Sequence record: OR836606.1
Strand: one strand, 5' to 3'
DNA length: 64,000 nt
Positions within the stretch are counted from its first letter, which is position 1; each line of letters opens with the position of its first letter. The translations under genes and the position numbers were made by a program. Positions 27,827-46,645 of this stretch are shown here, one piece after another. The notes beneath the pieces are model-generated. The model was not told the DNA's origin and did not search any database. It saw only the letters and a list, made by a program, of their open reading frames with translations.

Positions 27827-28897
27827 TTAATCTATATAATAACTATGACTAAATCTATCATCCGCTTTATTTTTATATGAATCGATTATATTCTTATTAA
27901 GTTCATTAATATCAATTGAATCATAATCTTCTTCTTTAGTATTTTCAGCTTTACCTAATAAATAACCATTTCCTTCTTGAGAGAAGAAATCGTGATTTCC
28001 AGTTGATGTCTTTAATCCTGCCATTACAATAGGATTTACATCTTCGTCAGTAGTTTCGAAAATAGGATCTAATTTAAGGTTTAATAATGCTTTATTGGCA
28101 TTGTATTGAGCAAACAATTTAACATCTTCAGCCCAACCAATTTCAGTATAAACTTCTTCAATGAATTCACATTCAACTTGATAAAGTTCAAATAGTAAGT
28201 TAGTTACCCACATTTTAGTTTCATTTTTTTCTTCTTCACTTAATTTTTCAAATCTCTTACTGAATTTATATCCAATATATGAACCATGAACAGACTCATC
28301 TCTTAAAATTAATTTTATAATTTCAAGAACTGATTTAAGACTATCTTTCAATCTTAAAGGAGTATAGAAACCTGAATAGAATAAGAATGATTCTAAAAAT
28401 ACTGAAGCTGCTTGAACTTTAAGAATGTCTCCAGATTGATAAGCTTCATTTATTAATTTAATTTTCTTTTGTACATATTTATTATTTTCTGCCCATTCAA
28501 AGTTTTCATCTACTTCTTTTGAAGTACATAATGTAGTAAAAATAGTACTATAACTACGAGCATGAATTGATTCCATAAAACCAATATTTCTTAATACGTC
28601 TTCTTCTAATGTAGTTAATGCGCTATGCATTAAAGCATCAGAACCTTCACGAGACTGAAGTGTATCTAAAATAGTTAATTCAGCAAATACTTTATTAACT
28701 ACCCCTTTAGTAACATCATCAGTGTTAGACCAAGCTTTAATATCATTTGAGACTGGAATACGTGTTGATGTCCAAAATTGAGACACTAAAGTATCATATG
28801 TCATAATATCTACATAATCATCTACTCTATTCCAGTTTACAGGTGTATAATAACCTTTATCTTTTGTATAACTTGTTAAGAAATCTCCTCTATCCAT
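27827..28897 (-). CDS. nrdF: Class Ib ribonucleotide reductase beta subunit
   Basis: LTILDTLQ, MESIHARSYSTIF, LESFLFYSGFY, IILRDES-like LILRDESVHG iron-ligand motifs. Confidence 0.95.
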   Translation of the reverse strand: MDRGDFLTSYTKDKGYYTPVNWNRVDDYVDIMTYDTLVSQFWTSTRIPVSNDIKAWSNTDDVTKGVVNKVFAELTILDTLQSREGSDALMHSALTTLEEDVLRNIGFMESIHARSYSTIFTTLCTSKEVDENFEWAENNKYVQKKIKLINEAYQSGDILKVQAASVFLESFLFYSGFYTPLRLKDSLKSVLEIIKLILRDESVHGSYIGYKFSKRFEKLSEEEKNETKMWVTNLLFELYQVECEFIEEVYTEIGWAEDVKLFAQYNANKALLNLKLDPIFETTDEDVNPIVMAGLKTSTGNHDFFSQEGNGYLLGKAENTKEEDYDSIDINELNKNIIDSYKNKADDRFSHSYYID

Positions 28898-28975: not shown

Positions 28976-31339
28976 TTATATACTACAGCTTTCACATTCA
29001 ACAATACCTTGAGAACTTTCATCATGATCAGGTGAATAAATACGAGTATAATACATAGATTTAATACCTTTACTATAAGCATAGTTACGTAATCTACTAA
29101 TATCACGAGTAGTAGTTTCTTTATCTAAAGAATCTTTTTTCCATTCATAAAGTTCTGGATCAAGTTCATTCATTAAGTAAATATTCATAGAAATACCTTG
29201 ATCTACGTGATATTGAGCTTCTGAATATAAATCAATCATATCTCTCATATCTAATTGGTAAGCATTTTTCTTAAAGTATTCAAAGTTGTCTGGTGTAATA
29301 CCTGGCGCTGGATAGAAAGTAGTGCCTGTTTTACCTTCTACACGTTCTTCAATTAACTCAACAATAGGATGAATTGAAGGCGATACTTCTCTAACATAGC
29401 CAATAGACCCATTAGGAGCTACAGCTAATCTATTCTGATTGTATAAACCATCCATAACAATATTATTTCTTAATTGTTCCCAATCGCTATCAGATGGAAT
29501 AAAAATGTCTTTAAATAATTCTTTAACTTTTTCAGTACGTGGTTGAATATTTTTACCAATATAACGTTTATCAAAATAAGAACCATCAGCATATTCAGTT
29601 TTCTCAAATAAATAGAATGATTCATTTTTCTCTTTAGCAATTTTATTTGATTCAACTAATGTCCAATAATTTAATAACATGAAATAAATATTAGTGAAAT
29701 CTTTAGATTCTTCAGAACCATATTGAATGTGGTTTTCAGCTAAGAAAGTGTGTAATCCCATAGCACCTAAACCAACTGTATGAAATAAATCATTTCCTTT
29801 TTTAATTGTAGGTACAGCTTCGATATTAGATTTTTCAGATACTGAATTTAAACTTCTTAACATAGTTCCTACTGATTTACCAAAATCTTCCGATTTCATT
29901 AAACCGGATACAATAGTTGAAGCTAAGTTACATGAAATATCTGTTCCTGTTTTAACATATTGTTGATTATCATCAACTAATGAAGGATATTGTACCTGCA
30001 AAATTTCTGAACACAAATTACTCATTTTAATTTTACCATGACTGATTGGATTAGCTCTATTAGCTGTATCAATATTAATGATATAAGGATATCCAGATTC
30101 TTGTTGTAATTTACTAATTGTGGTTTCTAAATCACGAGCATACATTTTATCTTTACTAATACGTTTATCATCTACAAAGATATCATAATAAGTATTAAAG
30201 TCAATACTGTCGAAATCCAAATCGTAATATTTTTTAATGTCATATGGGCTAAATGTATATAATGATTTATTTTCTTTAACTAACTGATAATATTTGTCTG
30301 GAACGGTTAAACCTAATGAAATAGTTTTTAATCTCACTTTCTCATCAGCATTTTCTTTCTTAGTATCTAAGAATTTCACTACATCTTTATGGAAAATATT
30401 TAAATAGAGCGCACCTGCACCATTACGTTGCATTTATATTAACTATATGAATTTCATATAGATTAGACTATATCTTATACTTCTAATAAGTATTATTATA
30501 TTTAATCGTTGGACAATCATAAAGATTGATGCTGATTAAGTTTATAAACTTTTCCAGCAATTAATAATATTTATACTGAGCCATTAAAATTAACCCAGTT
30601 GATTTACATATGATAATGTATCTTCAAATACTTTCATAACCGGAACTACTCCTGAAGCGGCACCTTCTACACCTTTAATTGGATCATTATCTGCACGTAG
30701 ATTTGATAAACTGATTCCACAGCCTCCGCCTCTTTTACTTAATTGAGCTACGTTAGTAACAGTTCTATAAATTGAAGCTAGAGAATCTTCCATTGTAACT
30801 AAGAAACAACTTATTAACTCACCAGAACGTTTTCTACCTGAATTGAGAAATGTCGGTGTAGCGGGTTGGAAAGTTCCTGTAATGATTTCTTTAGCGATAT
30901 TCTTAGCTAATTCTTCATCTCCATCAGCTAAATATAAAGCTACAAATAAAATTCTATCTTCATATAGTTCTAATAAAATCTCCCCAGCATCATCTTTCAT
31001 TGCATACTGTTCATAGAATTTTTTAGCCCCCAATAAGCGAGTAAATCTATGCTTATAAGCCATTAATTCTTTCATTAATCCTTTAATGAACTCAAAATCA
31101 TAATTATTGATCATATCGCCATCAATATAATCATTATCAACTAGATAATTAATTTTTTCTTTATATGTTTTAAAGTATCTTACATTCTTATTAACTGAAT
31201 CTAAGAAATATTTTTTAACTGAAGCTAATTCAAATTCTAAATCTAAATTACCGTCTTTTAATTGTGACCCTCTTGAGTTTAATTCGTTATATGAATAATC
31301 TTTAAATTTTTCTGAAGTTAAATCAATTTCTTTTGGCAT
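28976..31339 (-). CDS. nrdE: Class Ib RNR alpha subunit, spliced: join(30593-31339, 28976-30430), 733 aa
   Basis: FQPATPTFLN, SCF, SNLCSEI, CNL, VAPNGS, KSMYYTR, C-terminal CESC; splicing gives YVNQLG|QRNGAG. Confidence 0.92.
30431..30592 (-). ncRNA. Minimal group I intron (162 nt) in nrdE
   Basis: Exon ends in U, intron ends in G; P1 ACUGGGU/GCUCAGU with U.G at the splice site; core AAUUGCUGGAAA, AAUCAGCA, CAACGAUUAAA, AAGAUAUAGUC; removal restores the frame. Confidence 0.9.
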
Positions 31340-31368: not shown

Positions 31369-32082
31369 TTAATTTATTTCTTGTATTGCTTTTAAAATTT
31401 CTCTTTTATTATAATTTATCATTTCTTTATCATACTTCATGATAACTTTTTCCAAATTCTTTACAATATCTTCGAAAATTTTTTCTGACTTTGGATATTT
31501 TAAACCAAATCTTGTTGGTTCATAAACTAATATATGTTCGATACTACTTAAAGTGTTAGAAAAAGAGTACCAAAATGATATTTGATCTGAAGATTTCCTA
31601 AAAGATAAAGTTCTTAAATCTTTTATCTTAGATTTTTTAGATATTTTTGTAGGTTTACCATTTGGTTTAAAATAATATGATACGTCTGAAGAGTTTATTT
31701 TCTTATCCTTCAAAAAACCTCCATTTTTATTAATTTCAGAAATTCCTTCTTTTATATAATTCGGAGAATTTTCTATAAAATTAATCATAAGTTTTTTACC
31801 GGATTTCTGAAATTGTTCATGGTCCATTGTATTTAATTTATCTTCTTTTAATTCATTCCATTTATCAATAAATAATTTTAATATATTTTCTTCTATATGA
31901 GAATTGGAGGTTTTTATAGAAAATGAATTATTTTTTATATTTCCATTCTTTTTATAATCTTCATTTACTTTTTGATAATATTTTAATATACCCTTACTGA
32001 TATTATCATTTTCATTTTCTATTTTTTGACTATTGTTTTTAAATGATTTAACTGAGCTGTAATGAATTATATTTTCTTCCAT
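31369..32082 (-). CDS. Hypothetical protein inserted between nrdI and nrdE
   Basis: AAGGAGA SD; 237-aa ORF. Confidence 0.65.
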   Translation of the reverse strand: MEENIIHYSSVKSFKNNSQKIENENDNISKGILKYYQKVNEDYKKNGNIKNNSFSIKTSNSHIEENILKLFIDKWNELKEDKLNTMDHEQFQKSGKKLMINFIENSPNYIKEGISEINKNGGFLKDKKINSSDVSYYFKPNGKPTKISKKSKIKDLRTLSFRKSSDQISFWYSFSNTLSSIEHILVYEPTRFGLKYPKSEKIFEDIVKNLEKVIMKYDKEMINYNKREILKAIQEIN

Positions 32083-32106: not shown

Positions 32107-32511
32107 TTAACTTATAATACTAGAGTTACTTAACATTTCTAATTTTTTATTTAATTCTAAATGCTCATTTTTTATTCCATGAAGCTCAATTCCCATTATT
32201 AATTTTTTATTGAAATCTTTACATAATTTTTTAGGTGTAGTCAAGAATTCATAATTGAGATTTCTATTACCTGAACCAACTATACCTACACAGTTCATTA
32301 AATTATTACCCTTATTAAAGAATTTTTCTATATGATTATATACTGCATGCGGAGTATTATAAGAACCGCAAATAAGAACATATTCTTCATTAATTTCTAT
32401 ATCTTCACAATTATTTTTATTAAGTTCAATAGGTTCGCCGATTATTGATTTATCTAATTTATGTGCAAATATTTTACTATTACCTGTTAATGTAAAATAA
32501 ACTAATCTCAT
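32107..32511 (-). CDS. nrdI: NrdI flavodoxin
   Basis: VYFTLTGNS...F, GIVGSGNRN motifs; within the nrd cluster. Confidence 0.9.
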   Translation of the reverse strand: MRLVYFTLTGNSKIFAHKLDKSIIGEPIELNKNNCEDIEINEEYVLICGSYNTPHAVYNHIEKFFNKGNNLMNCVGIVGSGNRNLNYEFLTTPKKLCKDFNKKLIMGIELHGIKNEHLELNKKLEMLSNSSIIS

Positions 32512-32819: not shown

Positions 32820-33059
32820 TTAAGCATTAACTGTAGATAAAATTTGATTTAATTTAGCAGGATCATTACCAACGATTACATCTGTTCCAAAATCAATTAC
32901 AGGCAATGATTGATAACCTTTAGATAAAAGTTCTTCTTTAGCACTTTCATCTTCATCAATATTAATTTCAGTATAATCAACACCTTTATTATTTAAAAAC
33001 ATTTTACTGAAACCACATTTAGCGCAGTTATTCTTAGTATAAAATTTAATTTGTTCCAT
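32820..33059 (-). CDS. nrdH: NrdH glutaredoxin-like redoxin
   Basis: YTKNNCAKC CxxC, GYQSLPVI. Confidence 0.9.
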   Translation of the reverse strand: MEQIKFYTKNNCAKCGFSKMFLNNKGVDYTEINIDEDESAKEELLSKGYQSLPVIDFGTDVIVGNDPAKLNQILSTVNA

Positions 33060-34796: not shown

Positions 34797-37700
34797 TTAA
34801 TCTAATAGATTCATTATTCTTTTTGATTTCTGATCTGGAGAAGAATTGTTATTCTGTAATAAAGGATTACTAGGGAGATTACCATCAATAATTCCACTAA
34901 TACGTTTCATGGATGCAATATCTTTTCTTCTAGCTTGTCTTTCTTTTTCAATTTCTTCTGCATTATCTCCATCTGCAGATACCATTGAACCGTATTTAAC
35001 TTTAACAAATTTCTTAATGTCTTTCTCATAGTAATAAGCATATAAACAAAATAGATAACTCATAAGTAAATCGTCATGTCCGCCATCAGGGTGATCAATT
35101 CTACCTTTTTTCATTTGAAGGGATTTTATTTGTTGGAATAATGGTTTATTATTAACTAAATAAGGTTTTTCTTCAACAATCATTGATAAAATTTCATTGA
35201 GCATTAGATCTGCTATATAAATTCATGAGTTTAATTTAATTAAAATGAATTTATTCGACTTCGTCATCACTCTGACTTACTTTGCACTTTAAGTTTTTTC
35301 GTTATAAACTACTTCAACAGAAAGCTTTAATCAAAGCAGAGGTTAAAGCTCTTAAGTCATCGCATTTGGACATTTAGAGGAATAAGACCTCATTTAGCCT
35401 GCCCAACAAAACGCTTACCATACAGTTTTAAATTGACAGCAGCGTTATAATCTCTATCCATTTTATGTCCACAATCACAGGAATACCATCTATCTGATAG
35501 TTTCAACTTATCTTCTTTAGTTAGAATTTGGCCACAATTAGAACATAATTGAGTTGATGGAAACCATCTGTCAGCTACAATAATAGTATTACCATTGCTT
35601 TCAGCTTTTTGTTCAAGTAAAGTCCTAAACTGTCTCCAATTGGACTGTGCGATTGATTTGGATAGTTTTCTATTTTTAATCATATTTGAAACCTGTAAAT
35701 CTTCAATAGTTATATATTGATAATTGTTAATCAAGTTAGTAGTAATCTTATGAAGATAATCTTTTTTAATATTATTAATTCTATACCATACTTTTTGTAT
35801 TTTGGTTTTCAATACATTGTATTTATTAGAACCATAAACTTTTTTAGATAATCTTTTTTGGTAGTATTTGATTTTATTATAGAGTGAGATTAGTTTATTA
35901 TTTAATGAATGGTATTTTTTAAATTTACCGAAATCATCATTAATAATAGCTAAATCTTTTACACCTAAATCAATACCTACATGACTATTGTTATGAATTA
36001 ATTTTTTACTGTTATCAACTTTCATTACTATCGAAGCGAAATACCTACCAGCATATTTGGATATAGTTACTTCTTGTATAGAATTATAATCTTTGTTTAA
36101 AGGTTCTTTCATTTTAATTAATGAATTTACACCACGCAATTTAAGTTTATTATTTTTCTCACCTTTAATTTGAATAGCGTAAGGATCTTTCCTATAGAAC
36201 CTTGCTCTTAATTTAGATTTCTTTTTAGATTTAAATTTAGGATATTTACCATATCCTTTCCACATCATATTAAATGCTTTACCTAGATCTTCTGTAGAAG
36301 TTTCAATTATCATGATAATTTGATCTTTCTCCCAATCTTCTTTACATTTTTTAAGTTCATCACGAACTCTACGATGAGTTGGTTTTGGTAAAGATTTATC
36401 AATTTGATAATTATTCCACATATATTTCCATTTATTAAGTGCCTTGTTATAAATATAACGACTATATCCAAAAGCTTGATTAAATATCTCTCGTTGTTCT
36501 TTATTAGGTTTCAATTCGATTTTTATAGATTTGTACATGTGATTTTCACCTCGATTCATATTTCTAAATGATTTAGAATTTATAATTCATTGTTTAATAT
36601 ATCGAGGTAAAAATTATTTTAATTAAATTAAACTCACGAATTCCAGAAATCCCTTTCAGGTTCTGTTAAATAGCAAGACTATATCATGATCCATTAAATC
36701 AATGGACCCCTCGCACTTCGAAAAACTTCTGATGAAGTTAATCTACTCTACTCACTTCACATAGTATTTCAACTATGCTTATTCAGGTTAATCAAACCTG
36801 TGCTTTCGATAGTCGTTGAACGTTTATCCATCATGTGGACACTTCGCTGCTAGACTTCCCATTGTTTACAAACTTTAGCGATCTAGGGTTTTCACCTAGA
36901 CTTGTTTTCAGCATAGTTCATCTTAGAGATTTTTTCTGTCTTTCGACTGCATGTCACGCTATCCATTACTGGCATACGTTGTAGCTCTCTAAGCTTTAGG
37001 GTTTTACAAGCAATTCACGAGGTATTTTTACCACTAATTTCATGAATTAAAATTAGTTTAATTTACTTATATAGTAGCAGAGCGTGAAACATGAATTAAT
37101 AAGAATTTAAGTCTTAATTCACTTAAAATATCTTAAATTAAAACTGTTTCGTTACTCTAGATTTTTTAGTTGTATCAATACCATATCTTCTTACTTGTTT
37201 GGTAACTTTATTAGTGCTATTTCTAGGAATTTCATTAAATACTTGCTTATTAACTTCAACTTGTTTTTCTGCTACTCTATTCTTTAATGAGTAGAAAATA
37301 TTGTCTCCAATACCATCAGTTTGAATCATATCTTCTATCATTACAGTACCTGCATAGTTACGTTCAGGTATTAATACTGCATTAGGTATATAAAGCGTAA
37401 TAAGTTCTTTAATTAATTTTCTAAAAGTAGGTCCATTAATTACATTATTTTGGAAAATCATTACAGGCTCTAATGTACCTGGATCAACTACAGTAAATGC
37501 AGTATTATCTCGACCAAGACCACCAGATATATCAATACCAACAAGCCAGTTCTTTTCATGCATATTATCCATCTTTTTAACCATATAAACATAATAAGTT
37601 TTACCATTTATTTTAAAATCAATAGTATTATATATCTCTTTATTTGCATATAATGATAATTCTGACATTTGTTGTTCATCAAATAAAGAATCATCGTTAC

Positions 37701-39379
37701 TAAACGCCCATTCAAGAAGTATCTCACGTTTAACTGCTTCTAAAGAACCAATTTGACGTTTTTGCTTTTCTAACCAAGCATCATCTTTACCTAATTCTTT
37801 ATATGAATATTCTATATAGATGAATGAATTGCCTGAATTACTTTCCATATACTCTTCTAATTTTTCATTACCCTCTTCTTCAGAATTAATGTAATAATCA
37901 TATATTTTTTCTGTCCATTGTGCTGCATCATTCATTTGCTCAAAGAAGAACTGTCCTTGAGGTACATCCAAAGTACTCATATTTTTTATCCTATATTAAT
38001 TTAATATAGATAAGACTATATCTTAGTATATTATAATACCATTTATTATTTAGTCGTTAAACAAGTATTATCAACTTGATGCTGATTGTCTTAATAAAGA
38101 TTTTCCAGCAATTAAATAAATAAGCCCAGTTTAATTTTAGGCGTTGTTGTAATTAGAAGACCATAAGGTGTGCCATTTTTCTTAGCTATTGCAGATGCTG
38201 TAGAAACTGCCTTTTAATATTAATCTACATGGATTCCATATAGAATAGACTATATCTTAGTATTATATTAATACTATTTATTATTTAGTCGTTGAACACT
38301 ATAAATAGCGATGCTGATCGTCTTAATAAAGATTTTCCAGCAATTAAATAAATAAGCCCGCATTAATTTCAGGCCTCATTGCTTCAAACATTGTTTGGTT
38401 GTGTGGAATGAATGCCCACTCATCCAACCAGACCATAGGTCATTATGTTAACTATATTTAAAAAATATAGATCAGACTATATCATACTCATATAAATAAG
38501 TGAATATATTTAGTCGTTGAACACTATAATTAGTGATGCTGATTAAGATAATAATCTATTCCAGCAATTAATATTCTTTTACTACTGCAACTATCTACAG
38601 TAGAACCACGCTATTTTAGACTATATCTTCAATTTTATAATTGTCTTTTATTTAGTCGTTGAACACATATGTGATGCTGATCAAATTAAATAATTTGTCC
38701 CAGCAATTAAAAAGATTTATAGCAAGCCATGATATTAACCTGCTTTATTTGCACTCTCACTGTTAGTCGGAGGTGAAACTGTTTTAATAGTATTGTTATT
38801 ACTAGCTAATTGAAATTCGTTGATCTTATCTCTATCATTTTTATCTCCAAAATTAGCTAATACATATTCAGGTAAACATTTCTCTTTAAATAAGTTTTTA
38901 AGACGTTTTAAGTTCTCAGTTGTATCTGAATAAGATTTGTGTGTAAATAACATTGTATAGTTACTACCTACTAATAACATTATCCATGAATAATAACATA
39001 CTGCTGAATATGTTTTATAGTGCTGACGTGGAAGCATTATAGCTGTATCTAAATTGTGTAACATACAAAATGTCATCGCCATATTACCTCTATGAAGTTC
39101 ATACATAACCTTACCGCCAGGAACAGGAACTCTTATAACTTCCCTTAAATAAAACCATATATTAATTTTAGCTTCCCTTAATACACGGGTTTTCATTTCA
39201 TCAGAAAGTTCAGGATCCCAAGGATCTACTCCTACAAGATTTTTATCATATAGAGTTAATGGAATCCCATAATTTCTGACGTTGTTCTTCTTAAGATCCC
39301 TAGCCACTCTTAAAAAACTAACATTATTAGTTTTATAATCGTAATAAACTTTTTTCTTTAATTTTGGTTTAATTGTCAT
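34797..39379 (-). CDS. terL: Terminase large subunit in six exons: 38738-39379, 38597-38610, 38371-38440, 38139-38210, 37155-37977, 34797-35209 (677 aa)
   Basis: Walker A LPRQHYKT; splicing gives KAG|RGSTV|PMVWLDEWAF...MRP|AVS...ITTTP|STL...KKSR|DLML; nuclease motifs GIDISGG, ERN, HDDLLM; exon total 2034 nt is divisible by 3. Confidence 0.88.
35210..35400 (-). ncRNA. Putative TnpB omega-RNA scaffold (guide would extend into terminase exon 6)
   Basis: Structured non-coding right end after the tnpB stop (AAGAGCTTTAA/TTAAAGCTTT, TGACTT/AAGTCA); position follows known TnpB biology; 5' boundary approximate. Confidence 0.6.
35390..36538 (-). CDS. tnpB: TnpB RNA-guided nuclease (IS200/IS605/IS607 family), 382 aa
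   Basis: HTH N-terminus IKIELKPNKEQ; RuvC GIDLG, IEDL, DRDYNAA all intact; CSNCG/CDCG zinc finger; GAGGTG SD favours ATG at 36538. Confidence 0.92.
   Translation of the reverse strand: MYKSIKIELKPNKEQREIFNQAFGYSRYIYNKALNKWKYMWNNYQIDKSLPKPTHRRVRDELKKCKEDWEKDQIIMIIETSTEDLGKAFNMMWKGYGKYPKFKSKKKSKLRARFYRKDPYAIQIKGEKNNKLKLRGVNSLIKMKEPLNKDYNSIQEVTISKYAGRYFASIVMKVDNSKKLIHNNSHVGIDLGVKDLAIINDDFGKFKKYHSLNNKLISLYNKIKYYQKRLSKKVYGSNKYNVLKTKIQKVWYRINNIKKDYLHKITTNLINNYQYITIEDLQVSNMIKNRKLSKSIAQSNWRQFRTLLEQKAESNGNTIIVADRWFPSTQLCSNCGQILTKEDKLKLSDRWYSCDCGHKMDRDYNAAVNLKLYGKRFVGQAK
36548..36608 (-). promoter_or_regulatory. Hairpin sequestering the tnpB SD, with an internal late promoter (36583-36594)
   Basis: ACCTCGAT pairs with ATCGAGGT, which contains the SD; AACA ATGAAT TA lies between the arms. 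Confidence 0.65.
37978..38138 (-). ncRNA. Minimal group I intron (161 nt), terminase intron 4
   Basis: After ...ACGCCU, ends AUG; P1 GCCU/GGGC; AAUUGCUGGAAA, AAUCAGCAUCA, UUUAACGACUAAA, AAGAUAUAGUC. Confidence 0.88.
38211..38370 (-). ncRNA. Minimal group I intron (160 nt), terminase intron 3
   Basis: After AGGCCU, ends AAG; P1 AGGCCU/GGGCUU; full core motifs. Confidence 0.9.
38441..38596 (-). ncRNA. Minimal group I intron (156 nt), terminase intron 2
   Basis: P1 CUACUGU/GCAGUAG with terminal U.G; ends AUG; full core motifs. Confidence 0.9.
38611..38737 (-). ncRNA. Minimal group I intron (127 nt), terminase intron 1
   Basis: P1 AGCAGGU/GCUUGCU; P4 UGCUG/CAGCA; P5 CAAAUU/AAUUUG; P7 GACUA/UAGUC; P8 CAAUU/AAUUG; ends UAG only 8 nt after P7. 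Confidence 0.88.
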
Positions 39380-45283: not shown

Positions 45284-46645
45284 ATGTCTAAAGATATAAA
45301 AGCTTATCTTATTAATGAATCTAACACAACTTCTCAACCAGAAGTAGTTCAAGATAATAATAAATCGGTTAGATTCATTGCTGAGTTACAAGAAGCTGAT
45401 AGACAAAACCGTAATGGTCGTGTTTATCGTAAAGATGTTATTCAAAGTGGTTTAGATAGTCCAGTAATACAAGAAAAATTAGCAAGAAAAACTTTTTATG
45501 GTGAGTTTTAGGTTAAATGGCTCACATTAAATTATATTAATTGCTGGAAAAGATTATTATCTTAATCAGCATCAACTTAATACAAGTTGTTCAACGACTA
45601 AATATATAGCCTAGATGATATAGTCTAACCTTTATTAAAATGATAAAGAATAATAATTTGCAGGACATCCTTTAAGTGATGAACCTAAACGACAAATGTA
45701 TATTGATCAACGTAATATTTCTCATATCGTTACTAGAACATGGTGGAATGGTAATAAATTAATGGCAGAAGTAGAAACGGCACAAACAGCAGCTGGTAAA
45801 GATATGAAAGGTTTAATCGGACAAAAGTCTGACGTATCTTTCTCAATGCGTGGTTTCAGTAAAATTAATAGAACACCTTCTGGCGAAGTTGAAGTTACTA
45901 AACCTTTAAGATTAATCTGTTAAATTGTAGCAGCTTTATATAGAAATATATATTGAAAAAGAATATTAATTGCTAAGAAGTTTAATTAAGCCAATTAGCA
46001 TCAACTTAATACAAGTTGTTCAACGACTAAATATATTTACTCTTAATAAGAGTATGATATAGTCTAATCTTAATAGTAAGATCTATTAAGTTAATATAAT
46101 GTACGATAAAATAAACCTTGTCGCTTCTTAAAGCAATTTAAGAATGATAAAACTATTAATTGCTAAAATCTTTTATTAAAGTAATTAGCATCAACTTAAT
46201 AAAAGTTGTTCAAAGACTAAATATAGTTTATCCTTTTATAGGATAATGATATAGTCTGATCTATATTATACTAATATAGATAACATAAATGTGGGTAGTA
46301 ATTCCATCTCATCAAGATTCTTACATTCAAAATATTATTTCAGAAGGACACAATAATTATAATCCTAATGATTTACAAATGGTAAATGAATCAATTGATA
46401 TGTTCACTAATGGTAAAATTACTGAATTTTCTCCTAGAGAAGTTTTAACTTATATTAAAGAAAATTCAGATAATGTAAAATACATTGCTGAAGATATGGG
46501 GTTTGCTGGAGTTGATGAATCTAATATCAGTTATGATAAAGGATCTCAATTAGCTTCAATTAGAGAAAGTAATAAAACTATTAAAGTTTTCTTAGAAGAA
46601 TCTGTTCTTAATGGACTTGATGATTTCTATAGAAACTTTAAATAA
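45284..46645 (+). CDS. Prohead core protease (T4 gp21-like) in four exons: 45284-45506, 45661-45920, 46102-46107, 46292-46645 (280 aa)
   Basis: NRNGRVY; splicing gives GE-S-GHP; ISHIV; SFSMRG; IC|YD|WVVIPSH; exon total 843 nt is divisible by 3. Confidence 0.9.
45507..45660 (+). ncRNA. Minimal group I intron (154 nt), protease intron 1
   Basis: P1 GUGAGU/GCUCAC; AAUUGCUGGAAA, AAUCAGCAUCA, GUUCAACGACUAAA, GAUAUAGUC; ends UUG. Confidence 0.9.
45921..46101 (+). ncRNA. Minimal group I intron (181 nt), protease intron 2
   Basis: P1 CUGU/GCAG; compensatory P4 UGCUAA/UUAGCA; R and S elements; ends AUG. Confidence 0.88.
46108..46291 (+). ncRNA. Minimal group I intron (184 nt), protease intron 3
   Basis: P1 CGAU/GUCG; P4 UGCUAA/UUAGCA; GUUCAAAGACUAAA; GAUAUAGUC; ends AUG. 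Confidence 0.88.

Follow-up and report, generated by a model that had tools for sequence, protein, structure and literature searches.

A very small group I intron predicted in the class Ib nrdE gene of Staphylococcus jumbo phage LY01, one of about 34 related copies in the genome

Introns have been predicted before in jumbo phages related to AR9. Working from protein alignment only, Korn et al. (bioRxiv 10.1101/2020.12.14.422802) proposed them for MarsHill, Madawaska, Machias and AR9; the genes concerned were those of RNA polymerase, protease, polymerase, terminase and gyrase B. These authors did not succeed in reconstructing the terminase, and they assigned the introns neither to a ribozyme class nor to a structure or a family. 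In the paper on phage DC4, Rfam found no introns. The phages of Korn et al. represent the clade of the phage considered here, LY01: the AR9-like Staphylococcus jumbo phages include LY01, MarsHill, Madawaska, Machias, S6, PALS_2, DC4, SA1, AH12 and PB50. The GenBank coding sequence (CDS) of Machias nrdE is a join of three exons, including the intron at the LY01 site, so that an nrdE intron at this site is already implied by that entry. Here we describe this site in LY01, whose host is S. aureus YZ4 and whose source is a pig farm. The window is the last 64 kb (64,000 nucleotides, nt) of the LY01 genome (OR836606.1, 258,897 bp); window positions equal record positions minus 194,897, with the strand unchanged.

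The element is a 162-nt insertion, which lacks an open reading frame (ORF) and splits nrdE on the minus strand. We estimate at about 85% the probability that it is a stripped-down group I intron which splices out of the transcript of the class Ib nrdE gene; the estimate comes from comparison of sequences and from the predicted RNA structure. The gene appears in the window as two ORFs. The first (31339..30590, minus strand) has 249 codons and ends with ...SYVNQLG followed by a stop, and the second (30433..28976, minus strand) begins with MQRNGAGALYLNIFH. Since the PALS_2 ortholog is similar over its full length to solved NrdE structures (1PEM, E-value 1e-188; 6CGL, 2.5e-182), and since nrdF (27827..28897), nrdI (32107..32511) and an nrdH-like gene (32820..33059) are found nearby, the host gene can be assigned to the alpha subunit of class Ib ribonucleotide reductase (RNR), NrdE. 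In GenBank, nrdE is entered as two CDSs both in LY01 and in AH12, and the terminase and protease genes of LY01 are also annotated as fragments.

The boundaries of the insertion follow from the comparison with PALS_2. The nrdE gene of the latter is uninterrupted, 2202 nt long, and reads ...CAATTGGGT|CAACGTAATGG across the site with no insert; at the LY01 insertion point its sequence is ...CAATTGGGTCAACGTAATGG. The minus strand of LY01 reads ...AAT CAA CTG GGT | TAATTTTAATGG ... ATAAATG | CAA CGT AAT GGT, the gene being split at 30593|30592 and 30431|30430. When the LY01 exons are joined, a single ORF of 2202 nt is formed, of the same length as PALS_2 nrdE, and the intronless sequence is obtained with these cut points alone. 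The joined protein is 96.3% identical to that of PALS_2, codon differences being synonymous in 123 cases and nonsynonymous in 27. The predicted spliced NrdE would contain VFEDTLSYVNQLGQR as the peptide spanning the junction. The ATG at 30433, selected by ORF finders as the start of the second ORF, is formed by the last three nucleotides of the intron and belongs to the conserved 3' tail AUAAAUG of the intron family described below. No Shine-Dalgarno sequence was found upstream of this ATG, whereas seven neighbouring genes have AAGGAG-like sites 8–11 nt upstream of their starts. Automatic calling of splice sites by P1 strength and ORF openness put the 3' end of the nrdE intron 18 nt beyond its true position and was dropped; as it proved unreliable, all boundaries given here were taken only from intronless relatives. 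An in-frame UAA at the beginning of the intron, as seen here, was described as a general feature of nrdE and nrdF introns (Tourasse and Kolsto, PMC2504315).

The absence of Shine-Dalgarno sequence and the origin of the ATG bear on the possibility that the gene is truly split, with polypeptides of 249 and 485 amino acids translated apart and then assembled around a repeat-derived spacer of 162 nt: although two CDSs are annotated in both LY01 and AH12, the second ORF does start with ATG, and the RNA polymerase subunits of these phages provide a precedent, a split here would leave the equivalents of Q294 and R298 of the specificity loop on different polypeptides and the spacer holds a complete covarying ribozyme core, which makes this reading highly improbable.

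The segment of 100 residues around the junction aligns to residues 252–340 of E. coli NrdA without change of length, and hence Q and R of NQLG|QRNG are identified as equivalents of E. coli Q294 and R298 in specificity loop 2. These two residues were named as substrate-contacting residues of loop 2 in a bioRxiv paper on E. coli RNR. The initial annotation had placed an intron of 162 nt at 30431–30592, within the NQLG-QRNG segment of loop 2; the coordinates are exact to the base, as judged by the intronless PALS_2 gene and the joined ORF, and the junction does lie between the residues aligned to Q294 and R298.

Presence of the 162-nt intron varies among relatives: it is found in LY01, AH12 and Machias and is absent from PALS_2, S6, DC4, MarsHill, Madawaska and SA1. 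Machias nrdE is also interrupted at residues 208|209, by a second intron, which has about 982 nt and holds an HNH gene. The nrdE intron of vB_StaM_PB50 (OR770614) has the same boundary as in LY01, G249|Q250, the same opening UAAUUUUAAUGGCUCA through most of the guide, and shares the core motifs and the 3' tail. Unlike the LY01 intron, it is 714 nt long and harbours an HNH endonuclease ORF (PF01844) inside P8; its P3–P6 region differs considerably from the LY01 copy when compared by eye, and the best blastn match of the LY01 intron in PB50 is another PB50 locus (76.6%). Most likely, the LY01 intron is an ORF-less relative of the HNH-carrying PB50 family member residing at the same site. Since there is no ORF in the 162 nt, the LY01 copy does not qualify as an intron mobile by means of its own endonuclease.

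More distant phages use the same region. The nrdE intron of the Bacillus phage BSP18 (Herelleviridae) has the insertion point identical to that of LY01, DQMG|QRQG, an in-frame stop at its start, and the same J3/4-P4, J6/7-P7 and J8/7-P7 motifs; in contrast to the LY01 intron, it is longer (249 nt), richer in G+C, has longer peripheral helices, and scores 94 bits with RF00028, above the cut-off, compared to 32.8 bits in LY01. A second intron is located in BSP18 nrdE 22 codons downstream of the first one. In the Staphylococcus phage Twort, nrdE intron 1 (about 429 nt) interrupts the same loop-2 segment and shares the CAACGACUA and GAUAUAGUCU core motifs with LY01; from reading of the alignment and the U/G rule, it is situated one codon upstream of the LY01 site (NQG|GKREG). 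Rfam gave no match to this Twort intron at E-value 0.001 or below. Thus phage nrdE introns are indeed usually larger and often carry an endonuclease, as had been stated initially, and the suggested comparison of insertion sites gives PB50 and BSP18 at exactly the LY01 boundary and Twort one codon away. Occupation of the loop-2 site in at least two phage lineages, with the Twort intron one codon away, is an instance of the rule that elements of this kind become established at sites from which their imprecise loss is lethal.

The predicted secondary structure of the LY01 intron comprises P1 and the P3–P9 core with the P3/P7 pseudoknot (Table 1). P1 consists of seven pairs with the exon and two pairs inside the intron, closed by the loop AUUUUAA; the last exon base U30593 pairs with G30581. 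P1 stands directly before J1/3, the intron contains neither P2 nor an ORF, and at most one unpaired base is left between P3' and P8. The minimum-free-energy fold recovers P1, P4, P5, P6, P8 and P9 (z = -2.8 relative to shuffled sequences). The J3/4, J6/7-P7 and J8/7 sequences fit the Rfam consensus (AAUUGC, CAACGA.UAAA and AAGAUAUAGUC, respectively); J6/7 and P7 each hold one LY01-specific substitution, discussed below. The RF00028 model aligns end to end with the intron, scoring 32.8 bits with E-value 1e-6 in a local scan of 451 nt. The details proposed initially, namely a 7-bp P1, a wobble P7 and tiny P5, P6, P8 and P9 hairpins on a bare core, are all recovered: P1 is ACUGGGU/GCUCAGU including the U.G pair at position -1, P7 is a G.U variant of the family consensus, and the hairpins have 5, 5, 6 and 7 bp. 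The sequence-level features examined above support assignment of the element to group I. Subgroup IA2 (T4 td or Twort type) is defined by the P7.1/P7.2 extension between P3' and P8 and has P2. As there is no room for P7.1/P7.2 and no P2, the LY01 intron does not fit this subgroup, and no subgroup was assigned to it.

The nrdE intron is not alone in the genome. When the 162 nt were compared by blastn with the reassembled genome of LY01, 34 related copies were obtained, nrdE included, at 69–83% identity. The same query found 33 places in LY01, 30 in AH12, 29 in Machias, 21 in PB50, 12 in Madawaska and 10 in MarsHill in the phage database. When RNAalifold was applied to a plain MAFFT alignment, misalignment of the variable hairpins left only P4, P5 and P7 recognisable; hence it was replaced by a hand-written P3–P9 structure, a covariance model (R1) built from the 34 aligned copies, and re-alignment. 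The model recovers 33 copies at 107–140 bits, the nrdE copy having 129 bits. In the alignment of 33 paralogs fitted to the model, and for this reason somewhat favouring the structure, standard pairs occupy 97.6% of cells, as against 28–47% when the 3' partners are slid. Compensatory, double-sided changes are seen in 26 of the 39 pairs, and none of 500 column shuffles reached the observed values. P4 and P7 are nearly invariant across the family, while P3, P5, P6, P8 and P9 covary. In the clearly predicted copies P1 is copy-specific and complementary to the copy's own 5' exon, including the U.G pair. About half of the copies, the nrdE one among them, have P1 directly before P3; most of the remaining ones have P2, a hairpin ending in a GNRA loop. 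Several copies lack P8.

Taken together with the established group I pathway, from which the steps are derived, these features suggest the following mechanism. The last seven exon bases would pair with the guide to form P1, the U.G pair marking the 5' splice site, and the P3–P9 core would fold with the P3/P7 pseudoknot, a G-C pair of P7 serving as the guanosine pocket. Free guanosine would then attack the 5' splice site, and the 3'-OH of exon 1 would attack after the terminal G30431, joining GGU to CAA and restoring the NQLG-QRNG loop 2. The in-frame UAA at the intron start may halt ribosomes before they reach the ribozyme. The intron would be retained because its imprecise loss would destroy an essential loop.

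Several observations weigh against splicing of the LY01 intron or its assignment to group I. Rfam reports no hit for it at the gathering threshold or when the whole window is scanned by E-value. The gathering cut-off of RF00028 is 50 bits, well above the 32.8 bits of the nrdE intron, and standard Rfam scans miss it for this reason; this cut-off is curated and is not a biological definition. Further, four RNA libraries contain nrdE relatives with about 90% identity, whose contigs skip exactly the intron. In two of these libraries one allele, with depth up to about 4400, reads TTAGGA|CAACGT, with GGA in place of GGU. Since there is no U at position -1, this is, on sequence grounds, a natural intronless allele that could not host the LY01 intron. 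The RNA contig of another relative is closest to the intronless PALS_2; the libraries include a tick metatranscriptome. As the contigs look like natural intronless alleles, they are no proof of splicing, and the search of sequencing runs gave no run with LY01 itself and no RNA-seq of LY01, AH12 or Machias. Next, the LY01 copy has two substitutions, GUUCAAC to GUCCAAC in J6/7 and GACUA to GAUUA in P7 (C-G to U.G), in the most conserved stretch of the core; they are unique to this copy among the 34 paralogs and do not occur in the AH12 and Machias orthologs. Finally, the RNA has only 23% G+C, no P2 and no GNRA loops, and its autonomous folding is uncertain.

The last point leads to the best surviving alternative, that splicing proceeds only with a protein helper, such as an RNA chaperone or a maturase-like factor of the phage or the host. 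Dependence on protein cofactors is common among group I introns that are small or degenerate. Low G+C content and the lack of the usual peripheral braces, not only P2 and the GNRA tetraloop but any other obvious one, make dependence on a chaperone conceivable, and the phage encodes a protein of the cold-shock type. Nothing speaks directly against such a helper; the favourable z-score of the fold and the wide occurrence of the same compact design in other large phages tend to the opposite. We consider the need for a helper possible, though rather unlikely.

It is still less likely that the element is of group I by descent and has lost splicing in LY01, nrdE being a pseudogene and deoxynucleotides being supplied by the host RNR. 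The two LY01-specific changes at the otherwise invariant J6/7 and P7 positions, the minimal structure and the lack of RNA evidence fit this scenario. However, all helices are intact, the P7 change retains G.U pairing, and the Twort intron has G at the J6/7 position, which therefore varies among related introns. Moreover, both exons are intact, their differences from PALS_2 being mostly synonymous. Given the retained P7 pairing and the Twort base, we judge both core changes tolerable, with roughly a one-in-ten chance that the LY01 copy is impaired. We infer that the splicing group I intron remains the best description of the 162 nt.

Seven further introns of the same family were mapped in the window by colinearity with intronless references, the head protease gene of PALS_2 and the large terminase gene of DC4 (Table 1). 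The spliced LY01 terminase is colinear with that of DC4 at every exon junction checked, and the 6-nt exon of the protease gene is confirmed by the intronless PALS_2 gene. All eight window introns, whose boundaries are fixed by intronless relatives, have U at position -1 and G at the 3' end. Local scans with RF00028 match six of the seven further introns at 26.5–47.8 bits, giving three matches for the four introns of the terminase region. At Rfam gathering thresholds and in the E-value scan of the whole window none of the eight is reported, matches appearing only when stretches shorter than 1 kb are scanned. The published null result of Rfam for DC4 is consistent both with such sub-threshold scores and with the terminase and protease genes of DC4 being intronless.

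Table 1. Window coordinates of the nrdE exons, of the predicted intron and its structural elements, and of related introns in the terminase and protease genes
Feature	Position	Strand	Remarks
nrdE exon 1	30593..31339	-	249 codons, ending in ...SYVNQLG; final U paired with G in P1
Predicted ORF-less group I intron, 162 nt	30431..30592	-	starts with in-frame UAA; ends with terminal (omega) G 30431
nrdE exon 2	28976..30430	-	starts QRNGAG...
P1	30575..30599; exon ACUGGGU 30599..30593 with guide GCUCAGU 30581..30575	-	U.G at splice site
P3 UAUUAU/AUAAUA	30569..30564 with 30499..30494	-	
P4 UGCUGG/UCAGCA	30559..30554 with 30535..30530	-	encloses P5
P5 AAGUU/AACUU, loop UAUA	30551..30547 with 30542..30538	-	5 bp
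P6 CAAUC/GAUUG	30528..30524 with 30518..30514	-	5 bp
J6/7 UCCAAC and 5' strand of P7	30503..30513	-	J6/7 family consensus UUCAAC
P7 GAUUA/UAGUC	30507..30503 with 30470..30466	-	G.U variant; family consensus GACUA/UAGUC
P8 AUACUU/AAGUAU, loop AUUAG	30493..30488 with 30482..30477	-	6 bp; position of the HNH ORF in PB50
J8/7 AAGAUA and 3' strand of P7 UAGUC	30466..30476	-	
P9 CUAUAUG/CAUAUAG	30461..30455 with 30449..30443	-	7 bp
3' tail UUAAUAUAAAUG	ends at terminal G 30431	-	12 nt
Large terminase gene	37138..39379	-	split by four family introns
Terminase intron 1	38737..38611	-	127 nt, no P2, no P9
Terminase micro-exon	38610..38597	-	14 nt; encodes RGST of conserved ...AGRGSTVPMVWLDEW segment
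Terminase intron 2	38596..38441	-	156 nt
Terminase intron 3	38370..38211	-	160 nt
Terminase intron 4	38138..37978	-	161 nt
Head maturation protease gene	45284..46645	+	three family introns
Protease intron 1	45507..45660	+	154 nt
Protease intron 2	45921..46101	+	181 nt
Protease micro-exon	46102..46107	+	6 nt; TACGAT = Tyr-Asp
Protease intron 3	46108..46291	+	184 nt

These introns are of interest mainly as a family, for their small cores, for the micro-exons and because standard Rfam screening overlooks them. Natural, very small group I cores (127–162 nt), which can be compared across the 34 paralogs of a single genome and are in places separated by exons of only 6 or 14 nt, are attractive for work on the minimal requirements of catalysis by group I introns and for the design of compact tools for splicing or circular RNA. 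Boundaries based on the ribozyme allow one to derive exact mature proteins, among them the large terminase, whose reconstruction had failed in earlier work. Screens relying on Rfam miss such introns, and one published jumbo-phage paper reported none on this basis.

The introns measured here have 127–184 nt and about 23% G+C, about half of the family lack P2, one lacks P9, and the insertion sites are matched by short guide-sequence pairing only, often ...GGU. One could speculate from these features that the LY01 mini-introns are the smallest natural group I ribozymes capable of self-splicing without protein, and that they spread to about 34 sites by reverse splicing and cDNA synthesis, possibly by the phage's own retron-type reverse transcriptase; we regard this as doubtful. 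Another family copy, at about 165,035–165,150 of LY01 on the minus strand, follows seven exon bases identical to those at the nrdE intron (ACUGGGU) and shares with it the six-base guide core GCUCAG; the gene that holds this copy appears to be unrelated to nrdE. This could be a coincidence or a hint of targeting by guide pairing. LY01 encodes both a retron-type reverse transcriptase and a cold-shock protein; a role of either in intron spread or RNA folding is a matter of speculation.

Some other ORFs around nrdE differ between the phages. An ORF of 237 amino acids with a good ribosome-binding site (31369..32082, minus strand) is situated between nrdI and nrdE in LY01. It has no match in Pfam or PHROG. 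In PALS_2, Machias, PB50 and AH12 the ORF is missing, and nrdI and nrdE are directly adjacent. A free-standing homing endonuclease was considered for this ORF and ruled out, given the lack of Pfam and PHROG matches and its absence from the intron-bearing Machias and AH12. Conversely, LY01 lacks a small ORF that separates nrdE from nrdF in PALS_2, Machias and PB50. An ORF of 389 amino acids (35390..36559, minus strand) matches the IS605 OrfB transposase, the Cas12f1-like TNB domain and the HTH_OrfB domain, that is, a TnpB-type protein.

The Azoarcus pre-tRNA-Ile intron, with 205 nt, is frequently cited as an example of a self-splicing intron of group I that is very small. It resembles the LY01 nrdE intron in the compact group I core and the short P1 pairing. 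Unlike the latter, it has P2 and stabilising tetraloop-receptor contacts and is rich in G+C, whereas the nrdE intron is 43 nt shorter and lacks both P2 and GNRA loops. Closer parallels come from large phages. The Jug (jumbo gut) phages have on average 18.5 group I introns per genome, of about 206 nt, in terL, RNR and polymerase genes, and multiple self-splicing introns were reported in crAss-like phages (PMC12880540). As in the Jug phages, there are many introns per genome in LY01; the hosts and the lineage differ, and the LY01 introns are mostly smaller (127–184 nt where measured) and very A+U-rich. Further, the compact P7-P8-P7' module, GTTCAACGACTAAAT-N(8-38)-ATATAGTC, occurs in at least 119 stretches of viral contigs in IMG/VR, and the covariance model finds 102 compact matches in 80 of them, at 45–91 bits. 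Many of the contigs bearing the module have 200–400 kb, phage contigs of this size with several copies within a few kb being among them, and some belong to giant-virus metagenome bins. In view of the Jug phage introns and the IMG/VR matches, the compact design is already known and widespread in large phages, and the LY01 nrdE intron is, as far as its sequence indicates, a new and very small member of this class.

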